This document shows, in pieces, positions 30,761 through 53,903 of a DNA stretch of 64,000 bases (within the stretch, counting starts at the first letter, position 1; each line of letters begins with the position of its first letter). This stretch comes from Macrostomum hystrix (Eukaryota > Animalia > Platyhelminthes), in NCBI GenBank assembly GCA_950097015.1, contig CATNEN010000007.1, positions 5,952,001-6,016,000 on the forward strand, in the 5' to 3' direction. The notes under the pieces are model-generated. The model was given only the letters and a program-made list of their open reading frames with translations, did not search any database and had not been told where the DNA came from. The translations under genes and the position numbers were made by a program.

Positions 30761-30837
30761 CCGTACCGGAGTTGGACAGGCTCGGCAGCTGCCTGTTCAT
30801 CGGTGCGCACGAGGGCGTGTCTTCCGTGTCGATGTTC
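30761..30837 (+). pseudogene. Orphan ~75-bp fragment of iGluR A/B exon 3
   Basis: gagttggacaggctcggcagctgcctgttcatcggtgcgcacgagggcgtgtcttccgtgtcgatgttc is identical to 32029-32097. The acceptor ccag is mutated to ccgg. Confidence 0.8.
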
Positions 30838-31229: not shown

Positions 31230-34200
31230 ATGCAAACAATAACTTTCACTAGCCTTTTATGGACTACAGCCTACTATGTGCTTGTGATCATCAGTAGCAG
31301 AAGCGTTCTAGTTTGTCGCTGCGACATCACACTCGGTAAGCCTGCATAATAATGCAAGAAATGTCGAGAGATTTGCTTTTAAAAACTTCAGGTAATCGCT
31401 ACTTGAAATTAGTGCCAATCGTTGATTTTTAACAAGGATCATTAGTTTTGTCCCATATCCTCAAATCAGTTAGTGTTGTGAGACGCGAGAATGTTTGGAA
31501 ACCCTTGCGCGCACGCGATTACGGAAAAGCTCGTGAAGGTCGGGCCACAGTGGACCAATTAGGTCTGCAAGTCAGCTATCAGCGTGTCAGTTTGGGAAAC
31601 AGTGGGTCCTTATCCTAGGCGCCACAGTTCCGTCAGCTAGTTCACGAGTAACTGGATGTATATATCTATTGGATCAATCAAAATATAAATCAAGAATTTC
31701 TGCCTATCTGTGCAGGAACTCAGGCTGTGCAAAAATAGCTGATTCTAAGAAAAAACAGCTTTGACTCGTAATTTTAGCCTTCTTATGGAACGAGGAGGGC
31801 GTGGCTGCAATCGCCAAGAGTATGTTCGCGAAGAAGTTTCTACCTGGCATTCTGGACGCCTGCCCGTCTGTGTCTGGTGCCAGGGAAACTCGTTTCAACT
31901 TTGTGGAGATTGTGCAAGCCAAGCTTCTTGACATACCTGCAGCATTGGAGGGTAAGGAATCAATCCTCCTTGCTGTCTGCTGTTTAGGTGGGAAAGTGAA
32001 AGTGAAAACTCATTTGTAAACCGTGCCAGAGTTGGACAGGCTCGGCAGCTGCCTGTTCATCGGTGCGCACGAGGGCGTGTCTTCCGTGTCGATGTTCGCT
32101 CAGGCGAACTTGTCAAGCGGCCTGACGCCGGGCTCCGCTGCTGCCCGACGGTACCCCAGCATGCAGCTGCACCGGGTGGCGCCGATCACAGTGCCGTTGG
32201 CTACGGATGGCGTACTGCGGGCCCTCACACTGGCGATGGGCGGCAGCCTGGTCGCGGGCACCGAGTTGAGCATAGTGCTCGGCAGCGGCTACGATGCCTA
32301 CGACGTGGAGCTGTTGGCAGCCCAGTTCGCCGGCTCAGTCCAGATCTACCGACTCGAGCCGGGTGATGAGTACGATCTGCTTGGGGCGCTGATTGCAGAA
32401 TCGTCCACAGACATCCTTCTTATCGCGCGCCCTGACGAAGCCGAAGTTTTCTTGGCGGCCGCCTTCAATAGCCAGATGCTGATTCCTAGTTACCGTTGGT
32501 TTCTGTTCAATACGGTAAGGCTTAGTTTGCTTTGGAACTTAGCCATATTTAGGACCATTGATTTATAAGTTTCCGGAATCGCTGAAAATCACTCCAGCTT
32601 CTGGTTGAAAAGAACAACTTTGATGGCTTCACAGTTATCTCCAGGAACATCACCTCCATGGACTTTGGACCAATATCCAAGCTTATCGACAATGACCTCA
32701 AAACAACTGTGTCTGTCTATATATACGATATACTGTCCATATGGTCGATATATTTAAGAAACATAGTTTGCGACGAGGTAAGTGGCTCTACGTGTTGAAG
32801 TGTTAATTGTGCGATTAAAGTGGAAAGCTGTCATAAATCAAATCGTATACAACTGCAGTCAGGTGAGGTGAGCACCGCATTTGAAGGCCTGACTGGCTTC
32901 TTTCGATTGGCACCGGACGGAAGTGTTTCTAGGCAGGACTGGTTTATGTACTTTTATGCGGGTCTCGGCGAGCAGCGTGAACGGGTGAGCAGGCCATCTG
33001 GTTGATATTAGTTAATTCAAAGAAACAGAAAATCATCACATTGATATACTCACTAACTAAATTATCAAATTAAACCGTATATACTTGACTTTTCGCCTAC
33101 CAAAGATCGGCAACTGGTCTAGCACTGGCACATTTCACTTCGACCCACCTAAAGTTCGCATACCTACGGACGAGCTACTGAAAAGCGAGCTCAACTTGAA
33201 CGTGTTCAAGGTTGTCACCGTGCTGGTAAATTACAATTTATCATATTCGTTAAAGCGTTCGTGATTTTTGACTGGATCTCTGAGAACCAGTTTCGTTCCT
33301 GTGCACAATGCGCCTTGCTCTCTCGCTTCAGGCACCGCCCTTTGTTCAGTTTAAGAAGGGCTATGAAAACCGGACAAATGTCTCTCTCTACGATCGTCTA
33401 GAGGGCTTCGCAATGGACATGTGCAAACTAATTTTGGAGAACATGTCGGTGAGTCGATTTGGTTTTCGTTGGTTAAGAAAAATTTTGCAATGTCGAAAAT
33501 TACGGCTCTGAAAATTTTCAGAGTTTTCAAATTAGGTTTCAACGTTGAGTTGCCAGAACTCTAGGAGTTGATATCGAAATGGCAGAGACAAGCAACACGT
33601 GAAAATTAGTACCGCAAATTAGTACAAGGCCAAGTGATAGTGTATGCACTGTCTGACGATGAGAAAGTCAGGGCAGTTGTACAAACCTGTGAGAGAGTGT
33701 GTCTGCGTACGGTATCTTTGTGTACACGTGTGCTCAGGAGTCAGCGAAATGGGCAGAATTGGTTCCTCGCTGGCTGCGGGTTTATACTGTCACCAAATGA
33801 TGTGCCATTGCCCGCAGTCGGCAGTTATTATAATATTATTGTTTCTTACGCTCCTGAAATTATCTACCCCGAGCAGTTGAGTTCGGTGGAAGTGTTTCTA
33901 CAATCCGACGGTGGCTACGGCTCGCGCGAACCAACCTCGGGCTGGAACGGCATGGTGCTAACTCTGATTGAAGGCTCCGCCAACATGGCCTGTGCTCCAC
34001 TGTCCGACAGCGTGGACCGCCGCTCTGTAATCAAGTTCACCAAGCCAATCAAGTCGTATCAGCTGTCTATTCTGTACTCCAAGCCGGAGCCGAACCCGCT
34101 GACCCGCATGTTTGAGTTTCTCTCGCCGCTGCATCTTTACACCTGGATGGCCCTGCTCGGCTCAGTTCTAGCCTCAGCCCTGGTGATAGCTTTGTTGCAT

Positions 34201-35553
34201 CGACTGAGCCGCAACGAGCACTGCTTTAGCCTGTACGAGACTGTCTTCATTTCGTTCGCGTCATTGATACAAGGCTTAAACGCCTCAATACCAAATCGAC
34301 CATCCGGACAGCTCGTAAGATTTAAAAGTCTGTTTTAACTCGAGCTGTTTCCGATACTAGTTTGGCATATTAAAGTAATTTTGTACTGCCATGCTCAATA
34401 TACTCAATCGATATTTGGCATTATCTATTCTTTTTATTTCCCAACAGGTGACCGCAGTCTACTGGCTGTTCGCGTTCGTCATCCTGGTTGCCTACGTCAC
34501 CAACTACGCAGCGAAGCGGACTCTGGAGCGAGTGCAGGCGGAGATAACAGGCCTGGACAGCCTGCCAGTACAGACGGCCTATCAATATGGCACAATTTCC
34601 GGCTCCGTTTATCTGGACTTTCTGGTGAATTCCAATGACCCGATGCAGCAGGCGGCCTACAGGTACATTTCCAGTGACCCTAAGCAGAGGCAGCCTCCCA
34701 ACGTGAGCCAGGCGCTGGAGAAAGTGCGGAGCGGCAAATTCGCCTTCATCTATAGCTCAGTCATGAATGACTATTTCGCCCAGATCAACTGCAACTTCTA
34801 CGCTGTTGGCAGCTTCGGGCAGGACAACGCAATGCTGGGACTGCCGGAAACCGCCGAATACGACGAGATGATCAACCGGATTATCGACTACCTGGTGAGC
34901 ACTGGAGAGCGCGATCGGATCTTTAATCGGTGAGTGCTTTTGCTTATATGGACATAATTTATTAGCCAGACATAATTTTATCCCGCACAACAGGCAGGAA
35001 AGTACTTTATGAAAAAATCTTCTTCGAGAGAAATTTAGAATGCAGCTGTAGTAAGTGTATTGTTTCTTCTGCTGGTGCGCTAGGAAATTTCTAATTACGA
35101 ATCGAAGTCAGTTTGCGAAGGGATCGCGAATGAAATTTAGTGAAATTTAAATCACTTGGAATTGAGCTCTCGATAAACTTTTCTCACCATTTCAGATATT
35201 TTGAACCACCAGAGAGCGCACTGCCCGACTGCTCAAACAAATCGATGCCCTACGCTATCAGCAATTGGATACCACAAGAGCCAGATTTCTTCAACACTCG
35301 ACCAGGTGCTTTGACCCTCGGCAACACCCTGGGCATCGCCTTAATTAACCTGGCTGGCTGCCTTCTCACTCTGCTAATGGCTGCAGCTGAGATGGCCTAC
35401 CTGAAATTCAAGCATAGGTTTGTTCATCTGCGCGACAGCGCTCACAGGGACAAGCAGCTGCGCCTGGGCGGGATCGCGCTTGGTGCCGCGGCTGCAACTG
35501 ATGCGAAAGGCGAGGATAGTCACACAGATGAGACAATGGAATCACATGTTTAA
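31230..35553 (+). CDS. Divergent ionotropic glutamate receptor-family subunit A, 10 exons, ~861 aa
   Basis: Exons 31230-31335, 31778-31951, 32030-32514, 32598-32777, 32859-32984, 33106-33225, 33332-33448, 33877-34314, 34448-34929 and 35196-35553; all GT-AG and in phase (2586 nt). Signal peptide, ATD end FEGLTG/IGNW, S1 VVTVLAPPFV, EGFAMD, DGGYG..WNGMV, RRSVIKFTKP, FLSPL-M1, M2, M3, S2 YGT, M4, C-terminal ESHV. Confidence 0.88.
33620..33820 (+). repeat. Dispersed hairpin-containing repeat family, copy in iGluR A intron 7
   Basis: Visual alignment to 48375-48566 and to the reverse complement of 16920-17115. Confidence 0.75.
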
Positions 35554-35589
35554 CAATAGAAAGACTACGGGGAGATGTTTAATAAGCTA

Positions 35590-36010
35590 ACTGCCCACTT
35601 CACGATAGCTCCCCAACCAAATGACCGATTTTCGTGAAAGTGCACCATTGGGATCAATATTTTCACACTTTAGCCGTCAGACGTCAGCATCGTTGAGATA
35701 TTCATTGATTCTTGTTGACAAGGACAACTGACATTGCTATGTAAGCTTATGGCGAATCCAAAACGGTTCAATAATGTAATAATAAACAATATACTCAGCA
35801 AAAGTAGCCCACATGCTTGCATGATGACATTTTCTGAGCAGACAATTTATGACTATATTGGTGGATTTTGCCACCAGGCACCTCGACGAGAATCGTCGAA
35901 TATCTCGACGTTGCTAATGTTTTGTGATTCTGGAAGTTGTTTGATCGGATAGTGCGTAAAATTTTAGCTTGAGTTCTGCATTTTCATGACGATTGGTTAA
36001 TTATTTTGGG
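35590..36010 (+). mobile_element. Old non-autonomous element with degenerate inverted ends, copy 1 (3' of iGluR A)
   Basis: Aligns along its length to the reverse complement of 44120-44870 once the SINE is removed. Confidence 0.65.
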
Positions 36011-36373
36011 AGATACAGTAAAAAGAGAACTGTGCGTATTTGAAAACCCCGTGGTCTATCTTAACGGTTCTGCCATATCTACGATGCTATCTACGCCTCC
36101 TGTTGACTTTCAGTCCATGGACTAAAAGGGCGGCCTCACAAACCAAAATTTCTAGCCCAGCTAATTCTCGTACAAGAGGCGAATCTGATTTTCTAGGAAG
36201 GAAGTTTCTAGCTTAAGGACGCGAGATTCGAACTCAGTGTGGTACCATTCAACTACGAGAGGTGTTCCAAAGTCCTTTCCCTTTTGAGCATAGCTCAGGA
36301 TGTAGGATTGCAAAGCGGTTTTCGATGGCTTATAGAACTTCTTCTGTGCTTCTTTTGACACCAAGCTTATGCT

Positions 36374-36429
36374 CAAGGACTTCTATATAATAGCATCTAT
36401 TATAGGATGCTATTATATAGAAGTCCTTG
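36374..36429. mobile_element. 56-bp palindromic mini-MITE with 8-bp TSD (hAT-like)
   Basis: Perfect 24-bp arms caaggacttctatataatagcatc / gatgctattatatagaagtccttg; cttatgct at 36366-36373 and 36430-36437. Confidence 0.85.
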
Positions 36430-37047
36430 CTTATGCTAAACGGTAAAGCTGTTTCTGAGATATATGGTCATTGGCCATAGACACCTACCATTAGGTTTAC
36501 AAAGATTGATTTTTCTGCCTAAAACCAAGTCTTGTGTTGTGTTGACTTTAATTTTAAAGCCCAAGAAAGGAAATGTTAGCCATATGAAACATTACAAGAG
36601 TCTTTCTGCAAGTATTGTGTTTTCAAATGCCTTACTTCTTGTCAACAAGTTTGCTGTCTCTTTTGACATCTGGAGTTTGGATCACCTCCATGGATGCCCA
36701 CAGTGTCGAAGCACAGCGAGCTGCGATCTTTTCACTGTGGAAAAATTGTCAGTCGGCTATTCAAATTCATCAAGCCTTGGTCACCGCATACCAGGATCAA
36801 GCAGTGACTCTTCGCACCGTTCGCAATTGGATTGAGCGCTTTGAAGCAGGTCGAGAGCAACTGAGTGATCAACCTCGTTGTTTCTGTAAACCTTTCACTA
36901 GATCTCCATAGTAAAACGCCTAGCGTTTTGTGAAAAGTAGGCCTTTTTTAATAAGCTTGGTGTCAAAAGCAGCACAGAAAAAAGTTCTATAAGCCATCAA
37001 AAACCGCTTTGCAATCAGACTTCTACCTCCTGAGCTATGCTTAATAG

Positions 37048-37768
37048 TGTTGTGTCCCGAGACGGGCCACCCGGCTTCGCCTCTCGCTCAGGACGAGCAG
37101 GGAGGTTCAGCACTTCCGTCCTACTATGTGTCGGCCTACTGTCGCACTAGACGCACAGGCAGTAAGCCGGCAACCAAGGTCGCAACGAATGCACAGGCCC
37201 TGGCGACAAAGTCCTAGTGACTGAACCCGAAAAGACAGAGACAGAACGACACTTACGTAGGCTAGCAGTGCGGGTTTGCGCTCGGGAGAGCTGGCTGAGT
37301 GGATGTATTTTTTCTGGTAGGCGGTGGTTGGGGTGCTCAACAAAACAAAACCGTCACGTCAGAGGGGGGACGAGCGCGCGCACGCCAATAAATAAGACCT
37401 GCTCACCCAGGGTGAGCAGGGTAATACCCGATCACGGCTAAGCTGCAGGGTAGAGAGAGAAAGTAAGAGACAGTAAGAGAGAGAACCAGTCGCAGCCTCG
37501 CCAATCACGCAGGGTCAATAAGACAACTGGGCGAGCCGCGAACCAATGAGAGGGCAGGAACGGAAGATGACAATAACCGGGGGTACGCAACGTCTTAGCT
37601 CAACCAATCAGACGCCAGGGGTGAGAGAAATTGATAGGCAGGCAGGCGCAGAGCAAGAAAGGGGCAGGGGGGGCGACTCAAAGTGCAACGCGACAGTGAA
37701 AGTGCACCGAAAAATACAGTACATAGAAACTATTAAATACAGTACATAGAAACTATTAAATCACAACA
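37048..37768. mobile_element. Solo LTR (721 bp) inserted in the right TIR of the mariner element
   Basis: Termini TGTTGTG...CACAACA, 4-bp TSD atag (37044-37047 and 37769-37772); removing it restores the TIR. Confidence 0.88.
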
Positions 37769-38705
37769 ATAGGGAAAGGACTTTTGGAACTCCCCTCGTA
37801 CTCGTATATTTACAGTATCATTTTCATTTGACTTTACAGATCAACTACTGTCAGACACTAGACTGCTAAACACTACTAGACAGATAATTCTACTGTCACA
37901 ATCAACTACTTTGCGGTACTGCCATACTATAGTGTTCAGTGTGTAATGGTAGCGTTATTTACTGATCACCTATATTAATTTATCAGGTATGTAAAAGTGT
38001 GCGGTTAGAATAATGACAATCAATTATTTTTATTCTCTGAGTATTCGAATGCGAAAATGTAAATAAACTGATCAAATAAATATTAAAAATCGTCATTAAG
38101 TCTTGTGCCATAGGATCGGAAAGGCACTGTATATATTTGCTTTAAAAGGCCTGTCACTCTTGTAATGACCTCAGAGCCAGATTCGAGGAGTAATTAAAAT
38201 AGTCTGTGCTGTACACTGCATGTCTGAAACAATAGCAGGCTTTTTCAAGCTAATTGTCAACAGAGTGGGTCGCTTTGTGTTCTCGTGAGTCGCATTGCAA
38301 AGCATGCGCAGCGCTGTGAGAATCTCACCTTTTTGTTCCTTCAAGAGCTGAGAACTTGCATTTCCTAGCTGGGGTCCCTTCGCTGAGTCGCAGGCAGGAA
38401 TGTGTGGGCTAGCAAACAAGCGAAGGCAAATAAGCCTTGACTGCTGGAGGCATCTGGTCCCCAACCAATTCGTTTCCTGAACTGCTCCGTTAGAGCAACA
38501 GGCGCCACCTGTTTGCTGCAGTCTCGCATTGAGTAACTATTAAACAAATGCTGAGACAGCTTTGGATTGTCGTTGACCCATCCGAATTTAGAATGACAAA
38601 CATTCTGTCAGAGTCGTGATTTATTCTCACCGATCCAACCCACTTAAATAGCTCATAGTTCTCATTTTATTGGCAGTTGGAAACTAGCAGCACAGGGTAA
38701 TAATA

Positions 38706-41700
38706 ATGCAGTCCGCAACTTTCCCAGATAGTTCGTTGCGAACGTTGCTTCTCATTCTGACGGTCTTCAGCCAGGTGATGAGAATCTGCTGCGGCAACAT
38801 CACTCTAGGTACGGAAATTAATCTGCTATAAAGTGTTGTCGATGCATTTTAGTACATAAAAAAATTACACGATTAATACAAAAGTTTACCCCAGTACTTT
38901 CTGGAGTATAATTCTCACGTAGGAGGAGGGTAAGTGGCAAAGTGGTTAACGCGTTTGCCAACTCCTAAGGCACTGTCTAAAAAATGAAAAAACAGTTCTG
39001 ATGTACACCATGTGTGCCTTCGTACTGTTTCAGTGTGCGTGTGTTCAGGTGTCAGCTGATGTACATATTATTATCTGAAATGCATCCATCTTAAAGAATG
39101 CTCACGATTCGCTTCTTCCAGCTCTACTATGGAATCAGGAGGGCACAGCTGTTATCGCCCGGGAAATGTTTAACAGTAAATTTCTGCCCGCCATTCTGGG
39201 TGCGTGTCCTTCGCAGCCTGGCATCAACGAGACTCACTTTGACTTTGTGGAAATCGTGCACAACCGACTGCTGGACATTCCGGACGCTTTCCAGAGTGAG
39301 AATCAAAACTTATTCGAAGGGATGTTCGCAGATCAGGCTCGGAGCTGTTCTTCTGTGGTGCCTGTCAATTCGAACCGTTCATTTTTGGTAGCTTATGACG
39401 CATCATGACGCACCACAATCTATTAAATCAAATTTTCACATTGAGTTCATTACATCGGGACTTTTTATCATCTACTCTATCATAGAAATTGTCAGTCTTG
39501 CCAGTGTTACTCTCACTCTGCTTCTCACGATTTGTGAAACCGTGCCAGAGTTGGACAGGCTCAGCAGCTGCCTGTTCATCGGTGCGCACGAGGGCGTGTC
39601 TTCCGTGTCGATGTTCGCTCAGGCGAACTTGTCAAGCGGCCTGACGCCGAGCTCCGCTGCTGCCCGACGGTACCCCAGCATGCAGCTGCACCGGGTGGCG
39701 CCGATCACAGTGCCGTTGGCTACGGATGGCGTACTGCGGGCCCTCACACTGGCGATGGGCGGCAGCCTCGTCGCGGGCACCGAGTTGAGCATAGTGCTCG
39801 GCAGCGGCTACGACGCCTACGACGTGGAGCTGTTGGCAGCCCAGTTCGCCGGCTCAGTCCAGATCTACCGACTCGAGCCGGGCAAAGAGTACGATTTGGT
39901 CATGGCGCTTCGGTCCAAGTTTGCCAAAGAATTTTTTCTTGCGGCATCGTCCATCGAAGCTGAGAACTTGCTGTCCGCAGCTTTCAAAAGCGAAATGCTT
40001 CATCCGTCCTACCGGTGGTTTCTGTTTAACACGGTGAGACCATGTGAAGTGCCTGCCCGTTTAACAATGAGACCAACCAACTCACGAGACAGGCGGCTTC
40101 AATCTATAGCCGGGTTGAATTTCCAGACAAATGTCGATAGTGTTTTGTGCCGAAGGCCACCCTCAACTGGACCTTGGTAGTTAGAGCTAGGGGATTAAAG
40201 TATATTAGAATGGGGTTCAAACAGGTCCTTAACAGGTACTCAGGCACACACCAAATGGAACAGCAAATTAAAATATGGGAAATCGGAAAACAGTTAAAAA
40301 CTTGGGAAATGTAAACCCTCTTGTTTCTGCCTTAGCGGGGCACTGATAATCAGATGCATCTCGTGGTTTCTATAAATAGAAACTGACGTCAGATAAACAA
40401 GGCAGCAGATGTTACTAAAAATAGATATGAGTTAGAAGTACAAGTAAACAGGCAGTGTCCTCTAAGGATCACGTGAGGAAGGCAATTAACGGGCAGATAA
40501 AATGATTACACGTCATAGGCACTCACAATAGGTCCCTCCCCACCTCCTCCCCAGCTCCCCTTCACATGCTTGACTGATCCAAGCGCTTAGTTTATGCTCT
40601 TTTCGACGTTACGCGCTATTTTTTGCTGTTTTAATTAACTTTCATGATTACTCCACAATAATTCGCACGGCACAATGTGAATTAACAAAATTGCCGGCAT
40701 TGCAGCAAGTTGTGGAAAAGAACAATTTCTATGGCTTCCGAGTAGTTTCCTACAATATTACGTCAATGGATTTCGGACCGATTACAGTCGCTATCAACAA
40801 TGGCCTGAACTCGGCAAGAAAAATTTACCTGTTTGACCTCCTATCGATTTGGTCCGTCTATCTGAAGAATATTCTTTGCAATGAGGTAGGAGTTTAACTT
40901 TTTCTGTAGCTTTCACTCAAGCACAAGCGCTAAAATGAATGCCGAAAACACAAAGCCTTCACAAAAAACCTTAGTCAGCTGAGGTCAGCACAACTTTCAG
41001 CGGCATGACAGGCTCCTTTCGACTGGCCCCGAACGGCGCAGTTTCCAGACTGAACTGGTTCATGCACTTCTTCAAGGGGCTCGGAGAGCAGCGCCAAAGG
41101 GTGAGGACCATTGTGTAGTCAGTTTCAGTCACTTCCTGAGTCAAATTGTTGAAGCTGAGAATTGAGAGTGTAGAACTTCAAGGGCAAGTTCTGTGGTCTA
41201 GCAGGTGATCAATTAAAATATATTAGAAAACTAAATTGGTTATGTTTATCTAAACTATCATAAATACATTGAAATGCAGATCGGCAACTGGTCCAGCACA
41301 GGTGGTTTTTCATTTGAGCCGGCCAATCCGAGAATTCCAACCGATGAAGTGCTCATGCGAGAGCTCAACATGAATGTGTTTAAAGTAGTCACCGTGCTGG
41401 TATGATGTTTTGATTGAGAATGTCTCGAGAATTTTGCTACTGTCAGATGCTGCCACAAAGCCTGTTCAAATGGTTTCAGGATCCGCCCTTTGTGCAGTTC
41501 AAGAAGGGCTACGAGAATTTGACCAACGTATCACTGCACGACCGTCTGGAAGGGTTTGCCATGGACATATGCAAGCTAGTACTGGCTAACATGTCGGTGA
41601 GTCTCTGGCCTTGCTTGCATGCTGATAATTGACAGTACCACAGAGTCTGCTCACACAAGCCAATGTTCAACTAGTGTAATTATGTTGGTCTGTGTATCTT

Positions 41701-43988
41701 AGTATGATCAAGCTTGTAGAGATTTAATGTTATTTTTTAATTTCACGCAAACAAGAGTTAATCAAATAGCTCGTAATATATTTGTAGGAAATATGCCACT
41801 CGTCCAACTTAACAATGTCAGTAGTTTAGTTAGAATTGTATTTTATAATTTAAATGGAATCTAAAAACCAACGTAGCCCATTTACGTAAACCAAATGTAC
41901 GTGTAAAATGTATGTGGCCGTAGAACTGTGGCATATACGCCAGGAATACCATTTTTGGTTGATCACATACAATGGGATAGGGAAGTCATTTTGAAGTCAA
42001 TGAAGATAATGACGTCATAGTGACGATCATGCGACGCGAAAACTTTCTTCATGAATAAGACAATTAAATACATGAAATCCACAGAATTCTCCGATGAAGG
42101 GAACTTTGGGAAGACTCTGACAGGTCTAGACTTATGAGCTTGCTCAACCAGTGTGGACTTCCCAGGTGTGCGCAGGGTGCCCAGTTGTTAAACTTGTTTA
42201 ACTGTCCGGTCTTTTCGGCCTCCGCACTAGGTAGCTCAAGAATATTTTATAGGAGGAACCAATTATAGGTCGGATTAGCTTCTAAATGATCTACCTATTC
42301 TCAAGATTGCACTGACCAGTGTCAATAAACATTCAAGAAAAGTCTTAGGAAGGATTGTCGTGAATAACACGATACTGATAGTACGCCACGCATACGTTGC
42401 AAACCTATTAAAAAAGAATGACTTCGTCGTCTTACTAATTTGAGAAGAGAACTATCGCGAATTCAGCTCAGCGCCGAATACAAATCTACAAGCTGTCTCG
42501 TATGCATAAACTACTACCTGCCTGAACCACCCATTTTGCAGCTGAATTCCGTTGAGGTCTTTCTCCAGCCGGACGGTCTCTACGGCTCTTACGACCCAGT
42601 CAACGGCTGGAGAGGCATGGTGTCAACGCTGATGCAGAGCGGCGCGGGTCTGGCCTGTGCCTCCATGTCCGACACGGATATCCGTCGGAGCGTAGTGAAG
42701 TTCACGCAGCCAATCAAGTCCAATCAGCTGAACATTTTGTTTTCGAAACTCAAGCACGACCCATTCATCGTGATGTTTGAATTTCTTTCTCCACTGCATC
42801 TCTTCACCTGGCTGACCCTGCTCGGCTCCGGGGTGGTTTTGGCCCTAGTGCTCGCTGTCTTGCATCGCGTGAGCCGCAACGACCGACGAATCAGCCTATA
42901 CGACGCTCTCTACATTTCCTTCTCAATGCTGATCCAGGGCGTGAGGGTGTTCACACCGGATCGACCATCGTCACAGTTGGTAATTCATTCGATCAGCTAT
43001 TTTTAGACAGTTTAGTTTCATGATTTATTAAAAACCAGAAAACCAAACCCTATCAGGTGACCGGGATGTACTGGCTGTTCGCTCTGATCTTCCTTATCCT
43101 GTATTCAACTAACTACGCAGCCATGCGCACCTTGGAGCGAATTCAGACGGAGATCACGGGCCTAGAAAGTCTCACATTGCAGGCAGTTTATGACTACGGC
43201 ACAATTTATGACTCCGTGTATCTGGACTTCTTGAAAAAGTCTCCCGACCCATTACAACAAGCCACCTTCGCGCACATCGACAGCGATCCGCAGCACAGGC
43301 AGCCGATGAACATTAGCCAGGCGATCAGCATGATCAGGAATGGCACTTTCGCCTTCATCTACAGCTCCGTCATGAACGAGTACTACGCCAAGACGAACTG
43401 CGACCTTTCTGTGTCCGGAAGCTTCGGGCAAGAAAGCACGCGATTCGGTCTGCCGAGCAGCGCCGAATATGACGGCCTGATCAACCGGATCATCGACCAG
43501 CTGGTGCGCAGCGGTGTTGCGGACCGGATCTTCAAGCAGTGAGTGGAGCATGCATTCCTGTATAAAATGTTACTCGTGCAGAGTCAAAGACGGAAAAATT
43601 CAATCGATAAATGATTTCCCCCATCGCAACCAGATACTTCAACCCGCCGAAGAGTGAGTTGCCTGACTGCTCAAACAAGACCATGCCGTACGCCATCAAC
43701 GATTGGATACCCTCGGAGCCGGAGTTCTTCAACACTCGGCTAGGCGCACTGACCCTGAACAACACCCTGGGTATCACCGTCGTCAACCTGGCTGGCTGTC
43801 TGCTCACTCTGCTGCTGGCTGCCTTGGAGTTGGCCTACCAGGCCTTCAAAAAGCGGTTGAGGCGTTTCAAGGCGCGCCTGCAAGAAGACATCGCCATGGC
43901 AGCGGCGGCGGCAGCGGCGGCTGCGGCGGATTCTAATCCTCCGACTGATGAGAATCTTCCGGAACAGGCGTGGGAGTCTACTGTTTAG
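38706..43988 (+). CDS. Divergent ionotropic glutamate receptor-family subunit B (tandem paralog of A), 10 exons, ~859 aa
   Basis: Exons 38706-38808, 39122-39295, 39549-40033, 40706-40885, 40975-41100, 41280-41399, 41480-41596, 42542-42979, 43057-43538 and 43634-43988 (2580 nt). Internal exon lengths are identical to gene A, with the same domain motifs and C-terminal ESTV. Confidence 0.88.
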
Positions 43989-44119
43989 CAGCTGTACATG
44001 ACAGGATAACGGAGGGCACATTCAGAGTTTTTCAATGCCTTGTTTTTCACATAGGTGTCTGTAAATTCTGAGCCTGTTGAGTTTCGATCGCACTGCGATT
44101 TTACTACCCACAATTTTTT

Positions 44120-44870: not shown

Positions 44871-45043
44871 GCAAGAAATATTACGCAAAATAAAAAAGCT
44901 ATTGGCTTGTTAATTTGCATTCAACAGAAATGAAGATTGTCTGCCAGTCACTTGTATTTGCCTTCAGTATCAACTAGTAATTTGAGAGGAGAAATTGATT
45001 TGGTCGCAGGCAGAGTGAGAAAGTAATTTAGCCATACCAGGGA

Positions 45044-48000
45044 TCAGACGGCAGTTTCATCCTGCTGAGTCAGCACCAGAGTGCTCCGGCGGCGGCGGCT
45101 CATAGACGCTGCGCGCACGCTGTCCTCCCGGTCCACGAGGTTGCGACGCCAGCGGCCTCGGCAGCGGTCGAAGCCGTGCTCGAGGCCAGCCGCTAAGAGT
45201 GCCAGCGCGCAGCTGAGCAGGTTCAGCAGCAGCAGGCCGAAAGTCTCGCGCAGAGTCAGCGCACCCGGCCTCGGCGCTAGGCTGGGCGGTTCTTCGGGGG
45301 CCAGGCGCGACAGAATGGCGCCGATACCGCCTCTGTCCTCGGCGCTGCATAGCGGGCGTTGGCTTGCCGGAGCTTCAAAGTACCTGCGCAAGGATGGGTC
45401 ACGTGCGGCAGCTTAATGATGGTTCTTGGAGTTTCTCGAAGACGAGCGCAATTAGTCCGGCTCTCGCAACAATGGCCCAAAGCGAGGCTACGCTCGTAAT
45501 TTTTGGTGCAGCCCCTGAGAGAAGGCTTGTGCATGGGCCAACCGAAAAGGTACAGTACGAGTACACTGCGAGGCGATGAAAAAGTTATGACAGCTATACA
45601 CCTGTGTGTGCGCGCGCTCAGGATTAGTTCAGGATGGGCAGAATTGCCTCCTCCCTGGCTGCGGGTCGACGGAGTAAAATGATCTTTTTTCGCATCAGGT
45701 ACTTCAAAGAGAATTAAATCGAAACAGCTGATCGCTTTGTCGCCAAATGACGCTACCGTGTTTGTGATCGGCAGCCCCGTAAAAATGATAACATTCTGTA
45801 TTGTCGACAAAAAATGCGATCAACAATGCGATTTCAACCTCCAACGTGAGCGGAAGCGCCAAACCTCTGCTCCAGCTGATTCAACCAGTCGTCCGTCTGG
45901 TTAAGAGCAGTCGCGGCTGCCAGCTCCTCATTCAGCAGTGGCAGCAGTTCGGAGCCGCTTGGCAGGGCCAAAGCGAGGCCGATGGGGATTTCGTTGAAGA
46001 CAATGAGCTTGGCGTCGCAGGTCAGCTGGCTCCAGTAGGCGTTCCTCTTCGCGTCGTAGACAAGAGCGAATTCGCGGGTCTCCATTGCGACGCGGCCGGT
46101 TGAAGCGTCTCGGAACAGGTTGCGGTTGCGCTCCATTTGCTGGTACATTGCGCGGAGGCGTTGAAACGACGACTCCCTGAAGTAGGCGGAGTAGCTGGAG
46201 TTGGCCAGAGTGCCAAACTGGTAGGTCCTCTGGTCCATCAGGCTCGTCAGCTTGCTACCGATTGGCACCTGCAGCCTGGCGAGGGAGCGCCGGCCAGCCA
46301 TGTTGGACACGAAAGCCGCCATCAGCAGCAGCACCGCCAGGCGGAAGGTGCACACGGCGAACCGGCCGGAGGGTCGAGGTGGCTGCAACCTCCCGCCCTG
46401 AAAGTTTGCATGAAATTTCAGAAACTGACATCCTTAACACCCGTTCTCTGACACCTGTGACCTGTCTTCCAGGAGTATGCTTATTGAGACCCGATCGGTG
46501 GCACCTGTTGCCTGAAACCTGTTCCTTGACACTTGTTCTCTTAAATCTTTTCTTAGACCCCTATTCTCTGTGCACTACCATTTTTTCTCTCTAACACCTG
46601 TTCCCTGATACATTTTCTCTGACACCTGTCGCCTGACTTATTGTCTCTGACACCTGTTCCTGACAGATTTTCTCTGACACCTGTTCCCTGACTTATTTTC
46701 TCTGACACCTGTTCCCTGACTCATTGTCTGTGACACCTGTTCCCTGACTCATTGTCTCTGACACCTGTTCCCTGACTCATTGTCTCTGACACCTGTTCCC
46801 TGACTCATTGTCTCTGACACCTGTTCCCTGACTCATTGTCTCTGACACCTGTTCCCTGACTCATTGTCTCTGACACCTGCTCCTGAAACATGTTCCTTTA
46901 CATCTCTCCTCTGACACCTGTTCTGTATTCCTATTCTCTGACTCCTATTCTCTGCAAAAAAATCATTTTGACACGTGTTCTGCGACTACAGTTTACATTT
47001 TCTTAGGACCAGATATCTGACTCTATGAGGTCTTTCTAATAAGAAAATTTCCTGTTTAAACTGTTTTAATATTCTTCAAAAAATATATATTAGCTTCTGC
47101 CAAAGGACCTGGAGCAATTCGGCCAGGGCTGCGTAGACAGTGAAGACCACGTGAAAACGGCTGCGGTCCGGGTGCGCCCGGTGCAGGCCGGTCAGAACCA
47201 ACGCCAGGAGGCCGGCGGATGCCAGCGCCGTCAGCCAGACGTAGAGATCCATCGCCGCTATGAACTGGAAGGCGGACTCCACCGGATCCTCGCGCGGCTG
47301 ACGAAACAGCACCGACAGGTTGGTGCTGATGAAAGGCCGGGTCAAGGTCACAGTGTCGCCCAGCTGCCGGGACAACGATGGTGACGGCGGCGTCATGGCT
47401 GAGCAGGCGATGTCAGCGCGACCTTCGGCGAGTGCGGCAGCTACGCGGATCCAGGCGGCGTTGTTGACTGCCGTTGCCAGAGGCAACAGCTCCAGACTTA
47501 AGTTGGTCAGCTGCGAGTGCGATATTTGCAGTTCTCCTTTACTATTTCGTTTGCGCCTCCCGATCCTAGGACAAATCCTAGGAAAATTCTCAAATAATCC
47601 TCAATTTATTATCATGAGACAAATCCGATTGTTCGTCAGCAGAAAAAAATCCATTTTTTCCATTTATAATCTGACTTGGAATCAAACTGGGTCAGGATCC
47701 TCATTCCATTGCTTCTTGCACCTTCCCTAATGAAGCTTTGTGTGCGGCCGACAGCACAGCCGCAGCTATTGCGCGGCGCAGCTGAAGGCTGCGTACAGCT
47801 GTTCAGTCCATGGACTGGGGGGACGCCACACACACCTTCACTTATCCCGGCTAATACTATTACCCATTTAACAGCTGGGTGAACTGAAGCAATGCAGAGC
47901 TAAGTGTCTTGCTAAAGGACACAAATAGTTCCAGTGGAGCCAAGAATCGAACCTCCGACCTTCAAGTCACGAGTCCGACCCTCTAATTACATGGCTGCAA

Positions 48001-51000
48001 CACCTTCCATTCTATGATCCCTGGAAAAATTTCAACTGGTTTAGGATGAAGTCGCACCCCAAGTCGCTGCCTGAGCAGCAGCATGCACAGGTCGAATGCC
48101 AGGCCCTCCAGGCGCCGCTCCATCGGCTGGTCTATCCGGCCCTCCATGCCCGCTTTGAATCGCACATACGGCTCGTCCTGCAGCGGCGAGTGAGGAAGGA
48201 ATGAAGGAAGGAATATAAGGAGCTCAAGACGAACTCCGAAATGACTGCCAAATTTTTATTTCAGACTACTTTTGAGAGTGCAAGGTACATCTAACTCAAA
48301 CAAAGTGTGTGTGCATAAAAAATCTCAGGCTAGACGTGGAGAGAAGTCGTGCGACTTACGCCCTTGAGGGCCAAGATCCAAGGCACAGTTACCATGTACA
48401 CTGCCTGACGATGAGAAAGTCAGGGCAGCTGTACACACCTGTGTGAGTCTGCGTTCAGTATCTGTGTGAGTGTGTGCTGTGTGAGTGAGTGTGGAGTCAG
48501 CGAAATGAGCAGAATCGCCAGCGGGTCTAGTGTCACCGAATGATGTGCCACTGCCCGCAGCCCTCCTCGTTACGGTGGCAAGGAGCACAACAATAATGCT
48601 TTTGTTCAAAAACACTTGCCAGCACCAGCAGGACTTTCAGCGGCGCCAGTCGATAGTGCCGAAGGACGGCCTCGCGCGAGGTGTCCCGCGTCCTCGTTGG
48701 GGTCAGGCTGAACCTGCCGGCTGTTGAGAACTCGCCCACCTGTTTGTCAGGTGAAGCAGAGGGTATTCAAGATATTATTTTTGTTAGAATGTTTAGTCAA
48801 CAAGTTAATCAGCTGAAACTCGCCAGCTCCGGAGCAATCGGCAGGTTGCGGTAGATCAGCAAGCGCCAGTCCTCGCGCAGAGCCGCACCGTCTGGTAGCA
48901 GGCGGAAGGAACCCGTTAGGCCGGTGACGACGCGCTCCTCCTTGCTCTGCGAAGCAAATGGCTGCCGCCTGTACTGGACTCGCCTTATCCGATCCTTCCC
49001 ATCCTTCAATGATGTCTCCTTCGCAAATCTCAACTTCTCTAATATCTTTCAACCTCCAATCTCACACCTATGAGATATATTTCTCCCTTATCTTTCACTC
49101 CCAGCCTCGCTCGCTAATACCTCCCCAATCTTCCCTCCATCATATTCCTCACTTAAGTCCTCCCAGATTAAATCCTCTAATCTCTCCCAAACTAATCCCA
49201 TCTTCTTCCTCCCTCAATCTCCAATCCCATTAATAAATTGGATGTGACTCTCGCTACTTATAGTAGTTGGTAGAATACGCTAATAATATTAGACTTAGGC
49301 TTGACACGCACCCCGTTGCCGCAGGCGAGCTGCCTGACGAACTCCGTCCAGACGGTCAGCAGGTCGAACAGCATGGCGTGCCGGCTGCTTGGGAGCTGCT
49401 CGGCCAGCCAGCCAGGCAGCGGCCCGAACTCCAGCCCGGTGACGTTCTCCGCCTCGCTGGCAAACGGCGACTTTGGGGCACCGTCGACAGCTGCGGCGTC
49501 CTTCACAGCCAGGCCCTGCGATTGGGCGAAGGTAGAGGGGGCACCTGAGAGGGCTTTTTGTTGAGCGGCTTGGAGATGCAAGGATTCCTGGAAATCGCCT
49601 CTACAACCTGTCCTCTCTCCGCTGCCCCATCTCTCCCCTGTCCCATATCCCATATCCGCTTTCTTATCTCTCCCCTGTTCCATCTCTCCCCTGTCCCATC
49701 TCTCCCCTTTCTCATCTCTCCCCTTTCCCATCTCTCCCCTATCCCATCTCTCCCCTGTCCCATCTCTCCCCTGTCTCATCTCCCCCCTGTCTCATCTCTC
49801 CCCTGTCTCATCTTTCCCCTGTCCCATCTCTCCCCTTTCTCATCCGTCCCCTGTCCCATCTCTCCCCTTTCCCATCTCTCCCCCTTTCCCATCTCTCCCC
49901 TGTCTCATCCGTCCCCTGTCCCATCTCTCCCCTTTCCCATCTCTCCCCTTTCCCATCTCTCCCCTATCTCATACATCCCCTGTCTCATCTCTCTCCTGTC
50001 CCATCTCTCTCCTGTCTCATCCCACCCCTGTCTCGACCCAGCAGTCCACTGTTACACTGGCGGCTCTCTGATGAACGGTAAATCGGGATTCGGAGTGTGC
50101 GTCGCCTCGGGTGGTGAGGTCCTCTGGACCCACTCCCAGCACTGTGGCAAGAGCTCAAGCGTTTTCAAAAACGAAATGCTCGCCATCAGTCTCTGTGCGG
50201 CTGAACTGCGCCAGAGGCAGCTGACTGGACGGAGGATCTTTTTTCACTCCGACAGTCAAGCAGCCCTCAAGGCCCTCAGCCGCTGCACCTCTCGCTCCAG
50301 AACCACCTTGGACTGCAACACCCAGTTAAACGGGTTGGCGCAGTCTAACAAGGTGGAGCTGATATGGATCCCTGGACACGCCGGGCTCACAGGAATGAGA
50401 TGGCGGACCAGCTTGCTAAGGCTGGAGCAGCCAGCTCCCTGATGGGCCCGGGCCCGGAGTCCCCGATCCCCATCTCAGTTGTCAACTCCAGCATCAACTG
50501 CTGGATGGAGACCCAGCACCGGAGGAGGTGGTCCAGCACCCTGAACTGTCGCCAGTCCAGGGCTGCGGTGCCAACCCCCTCTAGTAACCTGCGTAAGGCC
50601 TTACTCAGGCTTAACCGCAGAGACCTAAGAGCAGTCACTATGGCTCTTTCGGGACATGGCTGCTTCACCAGACACCGTTACCTCCAAGGCCACGTGCCTG
50701 AGGAAACATGTCCTTTCTGCTGCTCCGGACGTGAAAACGCCGAGCACTTCATCTGCCATTGCCCGGCCTTCACCCGGGCTAGGCTAAAACATCTCGGGCC
50801 GGCGCCGACCCTAGTCGAAGCCTGCTCGCCCGAAAACATTCCACAACTAGCCCACTTCCTCCGGGATACCGGCCGAGCTGATTTCTTCCCAGCCTACGAG
50901 GAGGATCGCGCGGCGGGACCGACCGACGGACCACCCTGAGTGGCACCGCCTCGCTGGAGGCCGTCTGGCTGCCAGGGGTTAGCGATATGGGCGGCATCGG

Positions 51001-53903
51001 CCGCCTCCTCGCTGCGTCCGTCATGGAGGCTCCCTGCCGCTAAGTCAAGTAAGTCAAGCCCACCCCTGTCCCATCTCTCCCCTGTCTCATCCCTCCCGTC
51101 TCATCTCTCCCTTGTCTGTTCTATCCCCTCTCTGATCTCTTCCCTGCCTCATATCCCCAATCGCGAAATATGCTGGCCCTGGTTCAGAATCTTGACGATG
51201 TCTAGAATCTGCGAAGACATTTTATTAATATTGCCATTAACATTTTCCATTTTTTAGCTACTAACTTGCTTTTCGCAGTCTTTCTCATTCCCAATTGATG
51301 AGTTGTGCCCCTCTTCTTAAAACTGATTTCTTTCAGGCAAGAAGCTTCAAAGTTATTTTGGTCCAGAGTATGGTCCAGAAGCAGTTTGTCTGGCCAGTTT
51401 CAACAATCAGATCTGATTTCCGCAGCTCCAATTCTTGTAAACAAGCCGATCTTTAAAGACTTTACCTTGCGGCGTAACTAGAGCCGCTATCAGCGGAAAC
51501 CCTTGAAATGGACAAAGTGTACCAAGAAAAAAATACATAAAATGCGTTTGACAATTTATTTACAAAGCCCTGTAGCTGATGACAGGCTCCATGACGCAGG
51601 TGGGTCACTATTTGAATTGTTTGTGTTGGATTCCCCCCTCCTGGCAGATCTCAACAAAAGATCGAAGAAGCCCTTTGCGTGAGCATTATTGTCATAGACG
51701 TTTGTGATCTCCAGGTGTCAACCCAGATGTGACCCGACAGACCCGATGTCACATTCCTTTTTCCTCAACAGTTCTTAGATATTCTTCTTATGTTTCTTTG
51801 ATATTCCAAATATTTGCAATCAGTCTCGACCACCAAACAGTCATGCTAGACTAAGCTTGATCATGCTTGATCAAGAGCTGGGTCAAAATCGATCAAGAGC
51901 TGGGTCAAGCTTGATCAAGAGCTGGGTCAGTCTGGATCAAGAGCTGGGCCAAGCTTGATCAAGAGCTGGGTCAAGCTTGATCAAGAGCTGGGTGAAGCTG
52001 GATAAAGAGCTGGGTCGAGCTGGGTCGAGCTGGGTCAAGCTGAGTCAAGCTGGGTCAATCTGGGTCAAGCTGGGTCAAGCTGGGTCAAGCTGGGTCAAGC
52101 TGGGTCAAGCTGGGAATGGCTCATGGCTTACCGTATCAAAGAGCAGCCACCGCTGGTCGGGGTCCCACAGGCTGGTGTTGGCGGCCAGCCGCAGCAGCCG
52201 CAAAGTCAGCGGTCGCGGCGCCACCACCAGCAGCAGCCGACCGGGTCGCAGGGGGTGGAGCAGCTGGTCCACTATGCTAGCAGCGTTGCCACCGTCGGCG
52301 TTCAGCTGGTAGTAGACAACGCCACCTCGTCCTGCGCCATCGTCTTCGTCGGCAAAAAGCGGCATCAGATCGCGAGCCATGTACGGCGTAGCCAGGACTA
52401 CGGAGATCACGGAGGTACCGGCCGTGGCCGAGACGGTCAATGCCAGGCCGGGCGCCAGCTGCAAAAGGGGCGGCACCGGCAGTACCACCGACGAGTGCCA
52501 GCGGAGCGACGTCGGGGCCGCAGCGCGTAGCAGCCGGTGCCAGGCGCTTCGGCCCTCGCTTTCGATGCCATCTTCGAGTTCAGCGTCGGCTTCGGTATCG
52601 GCCGCGAAGAGGAAGGAGGAATTTGACAGCCGCTTGGCGTCTGCCATTTTGAAATTGGAACTGGGTTAGTTAAAAGCCACAAACCCGAACTCCGAACCCA
52701 AATAACAAACCCGAATCACAAACCCGAATCACAAATCCGAAACACAAACCCGAATAACAAACCCGAATCACAAACCCGAATCACAACCCCGAAAACACAA
52801 ACCCGAATAACAAACCCAAAAACACAAACCCAAATCACAAACCCGAAACACAAACCCGAATCACAAACCCGAAACAAAAACCCGAATTACAAACCCGAAT
52901 AACAAACCCGAATAACAAACCCGAATAACAAAACCGAATAACAAACCCGAAAACACAAGCCCGAATCACAAACCCGAAACACAAGCCCGAATCACAAACC
53001 CGAAACACAAACCCGAATCACAAACCCGAACCAAAACCACGAAACACAAACCCAAACCCGAATCACAACCCCGAAAACACAAACCCGAATCACAAACCCG
53101 AAACACAAACCCGAATCACAAACCCGAATAACAAACCCGAAAACACAAACCCGAATCACAAACCCGAATCACAAACCCGAAACACAAATCCGAATTAAAA
53201 ACCTGAATTACAAACCCGAAAACACAAACCCGAATCAAAAACCCGAAACACAAACCCGAATCACAACCCCGAAAACACAAACCCGAAACACAAACCCGAA
53301 ACACAAATCCGAATTAAAAACCCGAATCACAAACCCGAATAACAAACCCGAATAACAAACCCGAAAACACAAACCCGAATAACAAACCCGAAACACAAAC
53401 CCGAAACACAAACCCAAATTTACAAATCTGAACTTCCAATCTGAAAAACATGATAAAATTTCGAATCCGAACGTCACAGTCGGACAAAAGCCTCGGCAGG
53501 TAACTCAACGCCTGTAAAACTAGAATTCGGAATCGTCACGCGCCGAACCCCAGAAAGCCCCCCAAACTTACACAGCTCGGCCAGGTCAAATGACGTCCAT
53601 TTCGGCAGGATGAAATCCTCGAAGTTGAGTCGCAGGTTGGCCGCCGTGGAGCACTGGGCCCGCAGTCGCGACTCGAACAGGCCGCGGTAGAGCTGGCCCA
53701 GCTCGGCTGCCAGCCCAGGCTCCGGTCCGAACAGCGCTGCGAATCGAAGGGACGACCTTGAGACTCAATCTAGGTATGCAACAATTCAATATTCTCACAA
53801 TTGTATTGGCATACTCACCAAATGAGTAGTTTGTGTCAGTGTGAGCACTCGCGATCAGGCTAATCGCAATTTGCAACTGAAATAGTGCAAATTTTCCAAT
53901 CAT
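45044..53903 (-). CDS. Highly divergent ionotropic glutamate receptor-family subunit C, 10 exons, ~866 aa
   Basis: Exons 53903-53819, 53736-53572, 52640-52132, 49515-49312, 48946-48824, 48739-48620, 48177-48058, 47510-47109, 46397-45865 and 45383-45044 (2601 nt, in frame). Exon-by-exon homology to A/B: [57 protein letters not shown]-terminal ETAV. The model needs two GC donors and one weak GT donor; the 5' exons are less certain. Confidence 0.78.
46590..46925. repeat. 28-bp minisatellite (gacacctgttccctgactcattgtctct) in iGluR C intron 8
   Basis: Read directly; the flanking units are degenerate. Confidence 0.9.
47741..47987 (-). mobile_element. CORE-type SINE copy
   Basis: Reverse complement of the 44374-44646 family; B box GGTTCGATTC. 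Confidence 0.85.
48375..48566 (+). repeat. Dispersed hairpin-containing repeat family, copy in iGluR C intron 6
   Basis: Visual alignment to 33620-33820. Confidence 0.75.
49612..50032. repeat. Pyrimidine-rich 16-bp minisatellite (tctcccctgtcYcatc), same family as 26023-27480 but inverted; resumes at 51059-51140
   Basis: Read directly. Confidence 0.9.
50033..51058 (+). mobile_element. 5'-truncated non-LTR retrotransposon (RNase H plus C-terminal zinc knuckle; I/R1/LOA-like group), defective
   Basis: RNase H motifs YTGGS (normally YTDGS), SDSQAAL and WIPGHAG, a frameshift at ~50395 into NEMADQLAK, then LSGHG and [14 protein letters not shown] with a stop at 50939. 3' tail (taagtcaag)2 at 51041-51058; 12-bp TSD cccacccctgtc (50021-50032 and 51059-51070). 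Confidence 0.9.
51853..52115. repeat. 22-bp (caagagctgggtcaagcttgat) grading into 10-bp (agctgggtca) minisatellite
   Basis: Read directly; lies next to the exon 3 donor of iGluR C. Confidence 0.9.
52678..53420. repeat. 12-13-bp minisatellite (acaaacccgaaWc) in iGluR C intron 2
   Basis: Read directly. Confidence 0.93.

Follow-up and report, generated by a model that had tools for sequence, protein, structure and literature searches.

Divergent ionotropic glutamate receptor-type genes clustered in the genome of the flatworm Macrostomum hystrix

Organization of the locus

We studied three genes, A, B and C, that encode proteins of the ionotropic glutamate receptor (iGluR) type and lie within a stretch of 64,000 nucleotides of the Macrostomum hystrix genome (GenBank assembly GCA_950097015.1, contig CATNEN010000007.1, positions 5,952,001 to 6,016,000), hereafter the window; positions are counted from its first letter unless a contig is named. 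They are likely to be three intact paralogs of a fast-evolving iGluR-type subfamily that so far has been seen in Macrostomum only. A preliminary description, made from the letters of the window alone, had placed three intact ten-exon genes here, A and B in tandem on the plus strand and C convergent on the minus strand, and the gene models agreed with it: each gene began with ATG and, in a codon-by-codon check of the frame, showed a single terminal stop and zero internal stops over 861, 859 and 843 codons in A, B and C, respectively (862 in A when the stop is counted).

31230-35553, + strand: gene A, 861 aa, 10 exons (31230-31335, 31778-31951, 32030-32514, 32598-32777, 32859-32984, 33106-33225, 33332-33448, 33877-34314, 34448-34929 and 35196-35553, stop included); splice model from A/B conservation and GT-AG sites
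38706-43988, + strand: gene B, 859 aa, 10 exons (38706-38808, 39122-39295, 39549-40033, 40706-40885, 40975-41100, 41280-41399, 41480-41596, 42542-42979, 43057-43538 and 43634-43988); modelled like A
53903-45044, - strand: gene C, 843 aa, 10 exons (53903-53819, 53519-53424, tentative, 52640-52132, 49515-49312, 48946-48824, 48739-48620, 48177-48058, 47510-47109, 46397-45865 and 45383-45044)

The models of A and B came from a tblastx comparison of the two regions, which gave nine conserved blocks, and from an enumeration of splice sites constrained by frame and by agreement between the two genes; all their introns are GT-AG. Gene C was modelled on the minus strand by the same approach, guided by its likeness to A and by reading of the frames. 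The intron-phase series (1,1,0,0,0,0,0,0,2) is identical in the three genes. Introns 5 and 6 of C have GC donors (GCGAGT and GCAAGT), and several of its other donors are weak GT sites (GTCCTT, GTTTGG). The tentative exon 2 of C is the best frame-compatible candidate, with a family-like motif recognized by eye, but the family profile does not support it (E 1.2). Relative to A and B, C has its exon 8/9 boundary shifted upstream by 11 codons (C 47109/46397 vs A 34314/34448), and the nearest C-type paralog, on contig 1 (see below), has no intron at the C site. This shifted or absent intron between M2 and M3 suggests that introns have been lost, gained or displaced by sliding in the history of the family.

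Proteins of the same family are present in Macrostomum lignano (see below), and they are colinear with the exon junctions inferred here for the A/B/C region. The M. lignano gene models in GenBank derive from an RNA-seq genome-guided transcriptome assembly (PMC5730564). These transcript-derived relatives, aligning across the inferred junctions, point to transcription of the family in M. lignano.

Genes A and B are about 60% identical overall, and 60-70% identical outside a short tract in exon 3. The ratio of nonsynonymous to synonymous substitution rates (dN/dS; Nei-Gojobori, per exon) between them was 0.14-0.39 in every exon with an estimable dS, synonymous sites being saturated in several, and 0.20-0.29 in exons 8-10, which encode M1-M4 and the pore loop. 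Both genes are under purifying selection. In the tract, 345 of 350 nucleotides were identical between A and B vs about 60% in the remainder of exon 3, and the dS of exon 3 was 0.27 vs at least 1 in the other exons. We read this pattern of identity as a recent gene conversion between A and B. A short orphan copy of the start of exon 3 was found upstream of A, 96% identical to 32021-32101 in A and 93% to 39534-39620 in B; it is probably a relic of ectopic recombination like the conversion.

32012-32361 in A and about 39530-39879 in B, + strand: A/B conversion tract, covering the 3' end of intron 2 and ~110 codons at the start of exon 3, in the amino-terminal domain (ATD)
30761-30841, + strand: orphan copy of the exon 3 start, 81 nt, ~390 bp upstream of the ATG of A

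Receptor architecture, gate and ligand pocket

The proteins A, B and C were searched exon by exon, and statements on full-length proteins use the M. lignano database proteins as proxies. Pfam recognized Lig_chan-Glu_bd (PF10613) and Lig_chan (PF00060) in exons 8 and 9 of A and B, and a weak Lig_chan match (PF00060, E 0.005) in C; the full-length M. lignano orthologs passed the curated cut-offs for both PF10613 and PF00060. Among solved structures, exon 8 of A was closest to GluA1 (E 7e-18) and exon 9 to GluK5, GluD2 and GluK3 (E 7e-17 to 3e-13), and exon 8 of C aligned to S1-M1 of GluA1 (E 1.5e-3). The best 60 PDB matches were AMPA, kainate or delta chains in 60 of 60 cases, with no NMDA chain among them. 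Both S2 cysteines are present in all three proteins: exon 9 encodes the first, and exon 10 the second, within PDCS (A and B) or PLCS (C). The S1-M1-M2-M3-S2-M4 order and the S2 disulfide cysteines reported in the preliminary description were borne out by Pfam, by the PDB alignments and by these residues. A pre-M4 motif reads RPGALTL in A and C and RLGALTL in B. We had considered it as a special feature and rejected this reading: it is the counterpart of the usual S-A-L-S-L motif before M4, and what differs is the linker in front of it, estimated to be about 15 residues longer than in GluA2.

The stretch ahead of S1, encoded by exons 1-6, is about 397 residues long, close to the N-terminal domain of ~390 residues claimed before. 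Pfam saw no amino-terminal domain in the window exons or in the full-length M. lignano orthologs, so a profile-profile comparison was needed. The N-terminal profile of the family matched a canonical ANF_receptor-type ATD profile (hhalign 97.9%, E 3.9e-13, 195 columns), and exons 3, 4, 5 and 6 of C matched successive parts of the family ATD profile in the correct order (E 1e-6 to 9e-15). The structure model available was that of a B-like M. lignano ortholog (P0167) and not of a window protein. This AlphaFold2 model had a mean predicted local distance difference test (pLDDT) score of 82, with residues 30-95 poorly modelled and the transmembrane helices confident; Foldseek aligned it to full-length GluK2 and GluA2 with E down to 5e-39 over 730-870 alignment columns. 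Judging from these profile and model comparisons, A, B and C keep a genuine, divergent amino-terminal domain. Each protein keeps the full iGluR build, that is, a signal-like N-terminus (judged by eye only), the ATD, a two-lobed ligand-binding domain (LBD), M1, the pore loop, M3 and M4, in ATD-LBD-transmembrane domain (TMD) order and with the S2 disulfide. The ATD loss that marks tuning ionotropic receptors (IRs) was seen neither in A, B and C nor in any of the M. lignano relatives.

The M3 gate is rewritten. Where canonical receptors have SYTANLAAFLT, A reads AYVTNYAAKRT and B reads LYSTNYAAMRT, and the SYTANLAAF of the AMPA and kainate classes is absent from A, B and C.

34493-34519, + strand: M3 gate of A, YVTNYAAKR in place of YTANLAAFL
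43102-43128, + strand: M3 gate of B, YSTNYAAMR
46287-46313, - strand: M3 gate of C, FVSNMAGRR

A gate signature, Y..N(Y/M)A(A/G/V).R, was common to A, B, C and all M. lignano relatives. The changed positions are Thr617, Leu620, Phe623 and Leu624, the last being replaced by Arg in every member; A and B, in our reading of the alignment, retain Ala621 and Thr625 of the bundle crossing and the (T/S)LER stretch after them. The tip of the pore loop is (I/L)QG instead of MQQG, and position +4 is non-acidic (Asn in A, Arg in B and C), with a one-residue ambiguity of the alignment there. The best PDB chain for P0167 scored 119 bits (E 1.4e-33) vs 594 bits (E 4e-177) for a canonical intronless kainate-type gene of the same M. 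hystrix genome (contig 38, 33.42 Mb, open reading frame of 1012 aa). The strong divergence put forward in the preliminary description is seen in the gate alignments and in these scores.

The ligand pocket was read in GluA2 numbering from HMMER alignments to GluA1 and GluK5 and from a MAFFT table, with the following residues.

Tyr450: Tyr in A and B; aligned as Leu in C, uncertain (DG.YG motif missing)
Thr480: Ser in A and B; Thr in C
Arg485: Arg in A and B; Arg in C
Position 653: Ser in A and B; Ser in C
Position 654: Val in A and B; Ser in C
Position 655: Tyr in A and B; Tyr in C
Position 705: Ser in A and B; Asp in C

The contig-1 C-type gene and its M. lignano relative Mlig022707 have Thr, Arg, Ser653, Leu655 and Asp, and Asp is found at 705 in all family members outside the A/B/Mlig034115 lineage. 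In iGluRs, Arg485 and an acidic residue at 705 hold the amino-acid backbone, and Ser653 with a non-polar 655 makes a glycine-type site (PMC6307864). By the same criteria, loss of the acidic 705 should prevent amino-acid binding (PMC6307864). C has both Arg485 and the acidic residue, and A and B have the Arg together with Ser705. From these residues, C-type subunits look able to bind a small amino acid, and A and B seem incapable of binding an alpha-amino acid, though they may still bind a carboxylate.

Distribution and phylogenetic placement of the family

We compared exon 9 of A with 1.84 billion cluster representatives. Matches with E < 1e-30 were limited to three proteins, all of M. lignano, and a fourth match (E 6e-15) was also from this species. 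Among the best 150 matches, the gate signature occurred in six representatives only, again all of M. lignano, and the canonical motif in 118. The close relatives, all of M. lignano, are 46-72% identical; a homolog search from P0002 gave 2 matches only. In the M. hystrix genome (220,453,370 bases in 42 contigs, consistent with the published assembly of ~220 Mb and 42 contigs, PMC10468722) we counted at least 9-10 paralogs with the signature or with clear family similarity, A, B and C included, which supplies the genome-wide count that the preliminary description had called for. One of them lies on contig 7 about 15 kb upstream of the window, so that, with A, B and C, this part of the contig holds at least four family members. 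The members outside the window are the following.

Contig 1, 8.208, 8.212, 9.776 and 18.03 Mb: M. hystrix family members
Contig 7, 5.937 Mb: M. hystrix family member
Contig 38, 9.627 Mb and probably 9.659 Mb: M. hystrix family members
Mlig034115 (P0167/P0002), A0A1I8J5F7 (P0001), Mlig005297 (P0003), Mlig022707 (P0004), Mlig015771 (P0059) and Mlig025413 (P0085): M. lignano relatives

The M. lignano proteins share the clade (100/100), the gate signature and the architecture of A, B and C. P0001 is 72% identical to A in exon 9, and P0167 (Mlig034115) is the closest full-length relative of B, with 53-76% identity per exon; no ortholog of C was identified among the M. lignano relatives. These proteins carry automatic labels only (PBPe domain-containing, hypothetical protein and, once, kainate 2). 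In the library searched, we found no published description of the family or of the M. lignano gene names, and two metazoan iGluR classifications were built without flatworms (PMC6307864, PMC12226733). The term undescribed, used in the preliminary description, thus holds in that no paper on the family was found, and falls short in that its orthologs already stand in public databases as uncharacterised M. lignano proteins. The family is an unstudied lineage-specific branch of a known receptor superfamily, restricted so far to Macrostomum, and not a new kind of protein. Beside it, M. hystrix has canonical NMDA, kainate (contig 38) and AMPA-like genes; exons at 17,047,487-17,048,478 of contig 39 belong to a well-conserved NMDA receptor subunit of GluN1 type (E 6e-48 to GluN1).

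A maximum likelihood (ML) tree of the LBD and TMD was built from 49 rows and 409 columns with IQ-TREE (LG+C20+F+G4 PMSF; the bootstrap was not fully converged), the rows being picked from a FastTree tree of a full-length set of 73 rows. They comprised window exons, paralogs of the same genome, proteins of M. lignano, receptors from spiralians, insects, tunicates and vertebrates, and, as outgroup, one exon of GluN1; class labels of the reference receptors are automatic names combined with PDB similarity. The outgroup is a single 129-aa GluN1 exon of the same genome (contig 39, 17.048 Mb), so the rooting is rough, and a second GluN1 row (exon A, 52 aa) was too short and was misplaced in the tree. 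The groups recovered were as follows.

Macrostomum family, support 100/100
Subclade i, support 100/99: Mlig015771, Mlig025413, contig 1 9.776 Mb and contig 7 5.937 Mb
Subclade ii, support 89/83: C, contig 1 8.208 Mb and Mlig022707
Subclade iii (A-type), support 100/100: A, B, contig 1 18.03 Mb, Mlig034115, P0001, and contig 1 8.212 Mb with Mlig005297
Sisterhood of the family to a mollusc/nemertean clade of ~810-aa receptors, support 99/92

Within the A-type subclade, A groups with P0001 and B with Mlig034115; therefore, the duplication that gave A and B is older than the divergence of M. lignano from M. hystrix. The tree set the kainate clade (100/99) and the AMPA-like rows apart from the family and from its sister clade, with the family inside neither the AMPA nor the kainate receptors. 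Both the best 60 PDB matches and the GluN1 rooting placed the family within AKDF in the broad sense, nearer to AMPA/kainate/delta than to NMDA receptors. The reading that fits best, with caveats, is that of a flatworm offshoot of a spiralian group, evolving fast and located on the AMPA/kainate/delta side. According to the preliminary description, these proteins fitted neither the classical receptor classes nor the tuning IRs; this stands as far as they lie outside the AMPA and kainate clades and keep the ATD, and is too strong as far as they sit on the AMPA/kainate/delta side, with the 99/92 sisterhood. The same description had claimed a lineage-specific, highly divergent family, which agrees with the 100/100 clade, its own gate and the occurrence so far in Macrostomum only. 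The ML phylogeny that it proposed was run against AMPA/kainate-type receptors and GluN1 and returned this clade; Epsilon, Lambda and IR25a/IR8a sequences were not among the rows. A moth protein (P0191), considered as a candidate IR25a, was rejected as such and is a kainate-type receptor of the CG5621 group; the search from P0071 gave otherwise gastropod relatives only.

Other features of the window lie outside the receptor cluster. Two divergently oriented frames of rhodopsin-family G protein-coupled receptors and a kinase-domain frame were found.

4195-5082, + strand: rhodopsin-family receptor frame, upstream of the cluster (Pfam 7tm_1, E 4e-37)
7496-8608, - strand: rhodopsin-family receptor frame, upstream of the cluster (Pfam 7tm_1, E 4e-16)
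23642-24358, - strand: open frame that encodes the N-terminal domain of an ATP-NAD kinase (PF01513, E 1e-8)

Alternative readings, gene pairing and known systems

Several observations weigh against the reading of A, B and C as three intact members of a Macrostomum family with the placement given above. The three genes are predicted from genomic DNA alone; they stand in the tree as separate exon 8 and exon 9 rows; and the sisterhood to the mollusc clade, which links one long branch to another, might be an artefact of long-branch attraction. What can be said of heteromer formation and of ligand class is drawn from gene adjacency and residue patterns alone. Gene C, in addition, has a terminal branch of 2.25-2.5 changes per site vs 0.2-0.4 in its relatives (about 10-fold) and a deviant composition, carries the two GC donors and the weak donors GTCCTT and GTTTGG, and no ortholog of it was retrieved. 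These features of C would also fit a decaying or dead copy, with A and B as the only functional subunits, and so would its marginal Pfam and PDB matches and its introns, which are rich in tandem arrays and carry an RNase H fragment from a retroelement. We nevertheless judge that reading decidedly unlikely. C has 843 codons in ten exons without an internal stop, in phases exactly as in A and B, and by our own estimate a neutral frame of this length would stay open at ~53% G+C with a probability of about e^-36; a frame with the family phases cannot remain open by chance, so selection has maintained C throughout most or all of its existence. It keeps the fold-critical S2 cysteines, Arg485, Thr480, Asp705, RPGALTL and the YFE start of exon 10, its exons 3-6 still match the family ATD profile, and GCAAGT and GCGAGT are of the GC-AG donor type known to be used. 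The repeats and the retroelement in C introns are located as follows.

49558-50939, + strand, antisense in C intron 3: RNase H-type retroelement frames (PF00075, E 3.9e-5), just upstream of the exon 4 acceptor and flanked by a 16-nt tandem array (49614-50032)
52678-53419: 13-nt tandem array, 57 copies, abutting the tentative C exon 2
51854-52114: 22-nt tandem array, 12 copies
46588-46883: 28-nt tandem array, 10.6 copies

Elsewhere in the window, a 16-nt tandem array, GGAGAGATGAGACAGG, is repeated 93 times at 26023-27460 with extreme GC and AT skew; the C-rich array at 49614-50032 is related to it.

The remaining alternatives accept the genes and differ on what the proteins are. An origin in the protostome IR lineage (IR25a/IR8a-like), which would make them olfactory or gustatory IRs, agrees with their IR-level divergence (E 1.4e-33 for the best PDB match of P0167 vs 4e-177 for the kainate-type gene of the same genome), with a remodelled ligand pocket that has lost its acidic residue in A and B, with the lineage-specific expansion in clusters, and with the adjacency of a subunit keeping the ligand triad to ones that have lost it, which resembles co-receptor/tuning logic. 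We regard it as unlikely, on the grounds that every member examined keeps the ATD and that the only insect sequence drawn in by the mollusc sister clade is a kainate-type receptor (CG5621 group) and not IR25a. Among insect IRs, only IR25a and IR8a are known to keep an ATD. The rewritten gate, with Arg for Leu624 in all members, the loss of the acidic site in the pore loop, and the Asp705 of members outside the A/B lineage, as in delta and glycine-binding subunits, could instead mean that the proteins are no longer ligand-gated channels and act through their extracellular domains, like delta receptors in synapse organisation. This is very improbable given that Ala621, Thr625 and (T/S)LER are kept in A and B, that purifying selection acts on M1-M4 and the pore loop (dN/dS 0.20-0.29 in exons 8-10), and that the transmembrane helices are confident in the P0167 model. 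That they are ordinary homomeric glutamate-gated receptors merely looking divergent would be in line with the canonical overall fold and with Arg485 and Tyr450 in A and B, yet it is extremely improbable: A and B have Ser, not Glu or Asp, at 705, which should prevent amino-acid binding (PMC6307864), and Val and Tyr, not Ser and Thr, at 654 and 655.

We return to A, B and C as members of a divergent family and to their arrangement. The stop codons of B (43988) and C (45044) are tail to tail, 1.05 kb apart. On contig 1, a C-type gene (+ strand, end ~8,209,635) and an A-type gene (- strand, end ~8,210,583) are likewise convergent, ~0.95 kb apart. Their M. lignano orthologs, Mlig022707 and Mlig005297, have consecutive GenBank accessions on the same four contigs, the synteny of this pair being read from these accessions and shared contigs. 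The A-type and C-type subtrees are congruent. In the simplest history, an ancestral tail-to-tail pair of one A-type and one C-type gene would have been duplicated as a unit before the M. hystrix/M. lignano split; the A-type copy at the window locus would then have been duplicated in tandem into A and B, which would later have exchanged ~350 bp of exon 3 by gene conversion. The conserved tail-to-tail pair and the complementary ligand-binding residues make heteromeric pairing of A-type and C-type subunits plausible. The subunits would assemble as tetrameric ligand-gated cation channels in which the C-type subunit, with its Arg, Thr and Asp and a glycine-type Ser653, may be an amino-acid-binding or structural partner, and A and B, with the carboxylate-binding Arg and no acidic residue, may sense a ligand other than an alpha-amino acid. 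Pairing of A or B with C and a possible chemosensory role had both been suggested in the preliminary description; the channels may act in chemosensory cells or at synapses. We put forward, as a speculative proposal that we hold to be rather doubtful as a whole, that the gene pair encodes an obligate two-component receptor unique to macrostomids, with a C-type co-receptor bearing a glycine-like site and fast-diversifying A-type subunits, devoid of the acidic residue that binds the alpha-amine, setting specificity for non-amino-acid ligands. If true, macrostomids would have arrived on their own at the co-receptor/tuning logic of insect IRs and at the GluN1/GluN2 logic of NMDA receptors, with the ATD retained and a new M3 gate.

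The family is still one more lineage-specific expansion, and such expansions are common in the superfamily. Flatworms nonetheless hold deep, fast-evolving iGluR branches that keep all three receptor layers with the most conserved gating motif rewritten, which amounts to a natural experiment on how far SYTANLAAF, the pore tip and the ligand triad can change in a working iGluR. The conserved A-type/C-type pair offers a concrete, testable hypothesis of how the subunits are partnered. Function could be examined directly in M. lignano, a transgenic-ready species with orthologs of both the contig-1 pair and the A-type genes.

Among known systems, the AMPA and kainate receptors (GluA1-4, GluK1-5) are the best match of the family in sequence and fold and share with it the ATD-LBD-TMD order, the S2 disulfide, Arg485 and the ALTL-type pre-M4 motif, whereas their SYTANLAAF, the MQQG tip with an acidic +4, Ser654/Thr655 and Glu705 are not kept in the family. 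The mollusc/nemertean ~810-aa receptors, automatically named "glutamate receptor ionotropic, kainate 2-like" (among them Haliotis rubra XP_046580373, Octopus sinensis XP_036360172 and Lineus longissimus XP_064632989), are like the family in having an ATD (looked up as Pfam PF01094 on the mollusc members) and non-canonical ligand residues; unlike it, they have a near-canonical YTANLAA(F/Y/H)LT gate, lack Arg485 in most cases and are ~20% identical to it. The NMDA receptors, obligate GluN1/GluN2 heteromers, offer an analogy of working only, in that the C-type genes are of glycine type (Ser653, non-polar or aromatic 655, Arg485 and Asp705) and occur with a second subunit type; there is no relation at class level, and the M. 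hystrix GluN1 stands outside the family as the outgroup of the tree. The insect IRs resemble the family in their divergent pocket and gate, in their clustered lineage-specific expansion and in a possible split into triad-keeping and triad-losing subunits, and differ from it in that all Macrostomum members keep the ATD.

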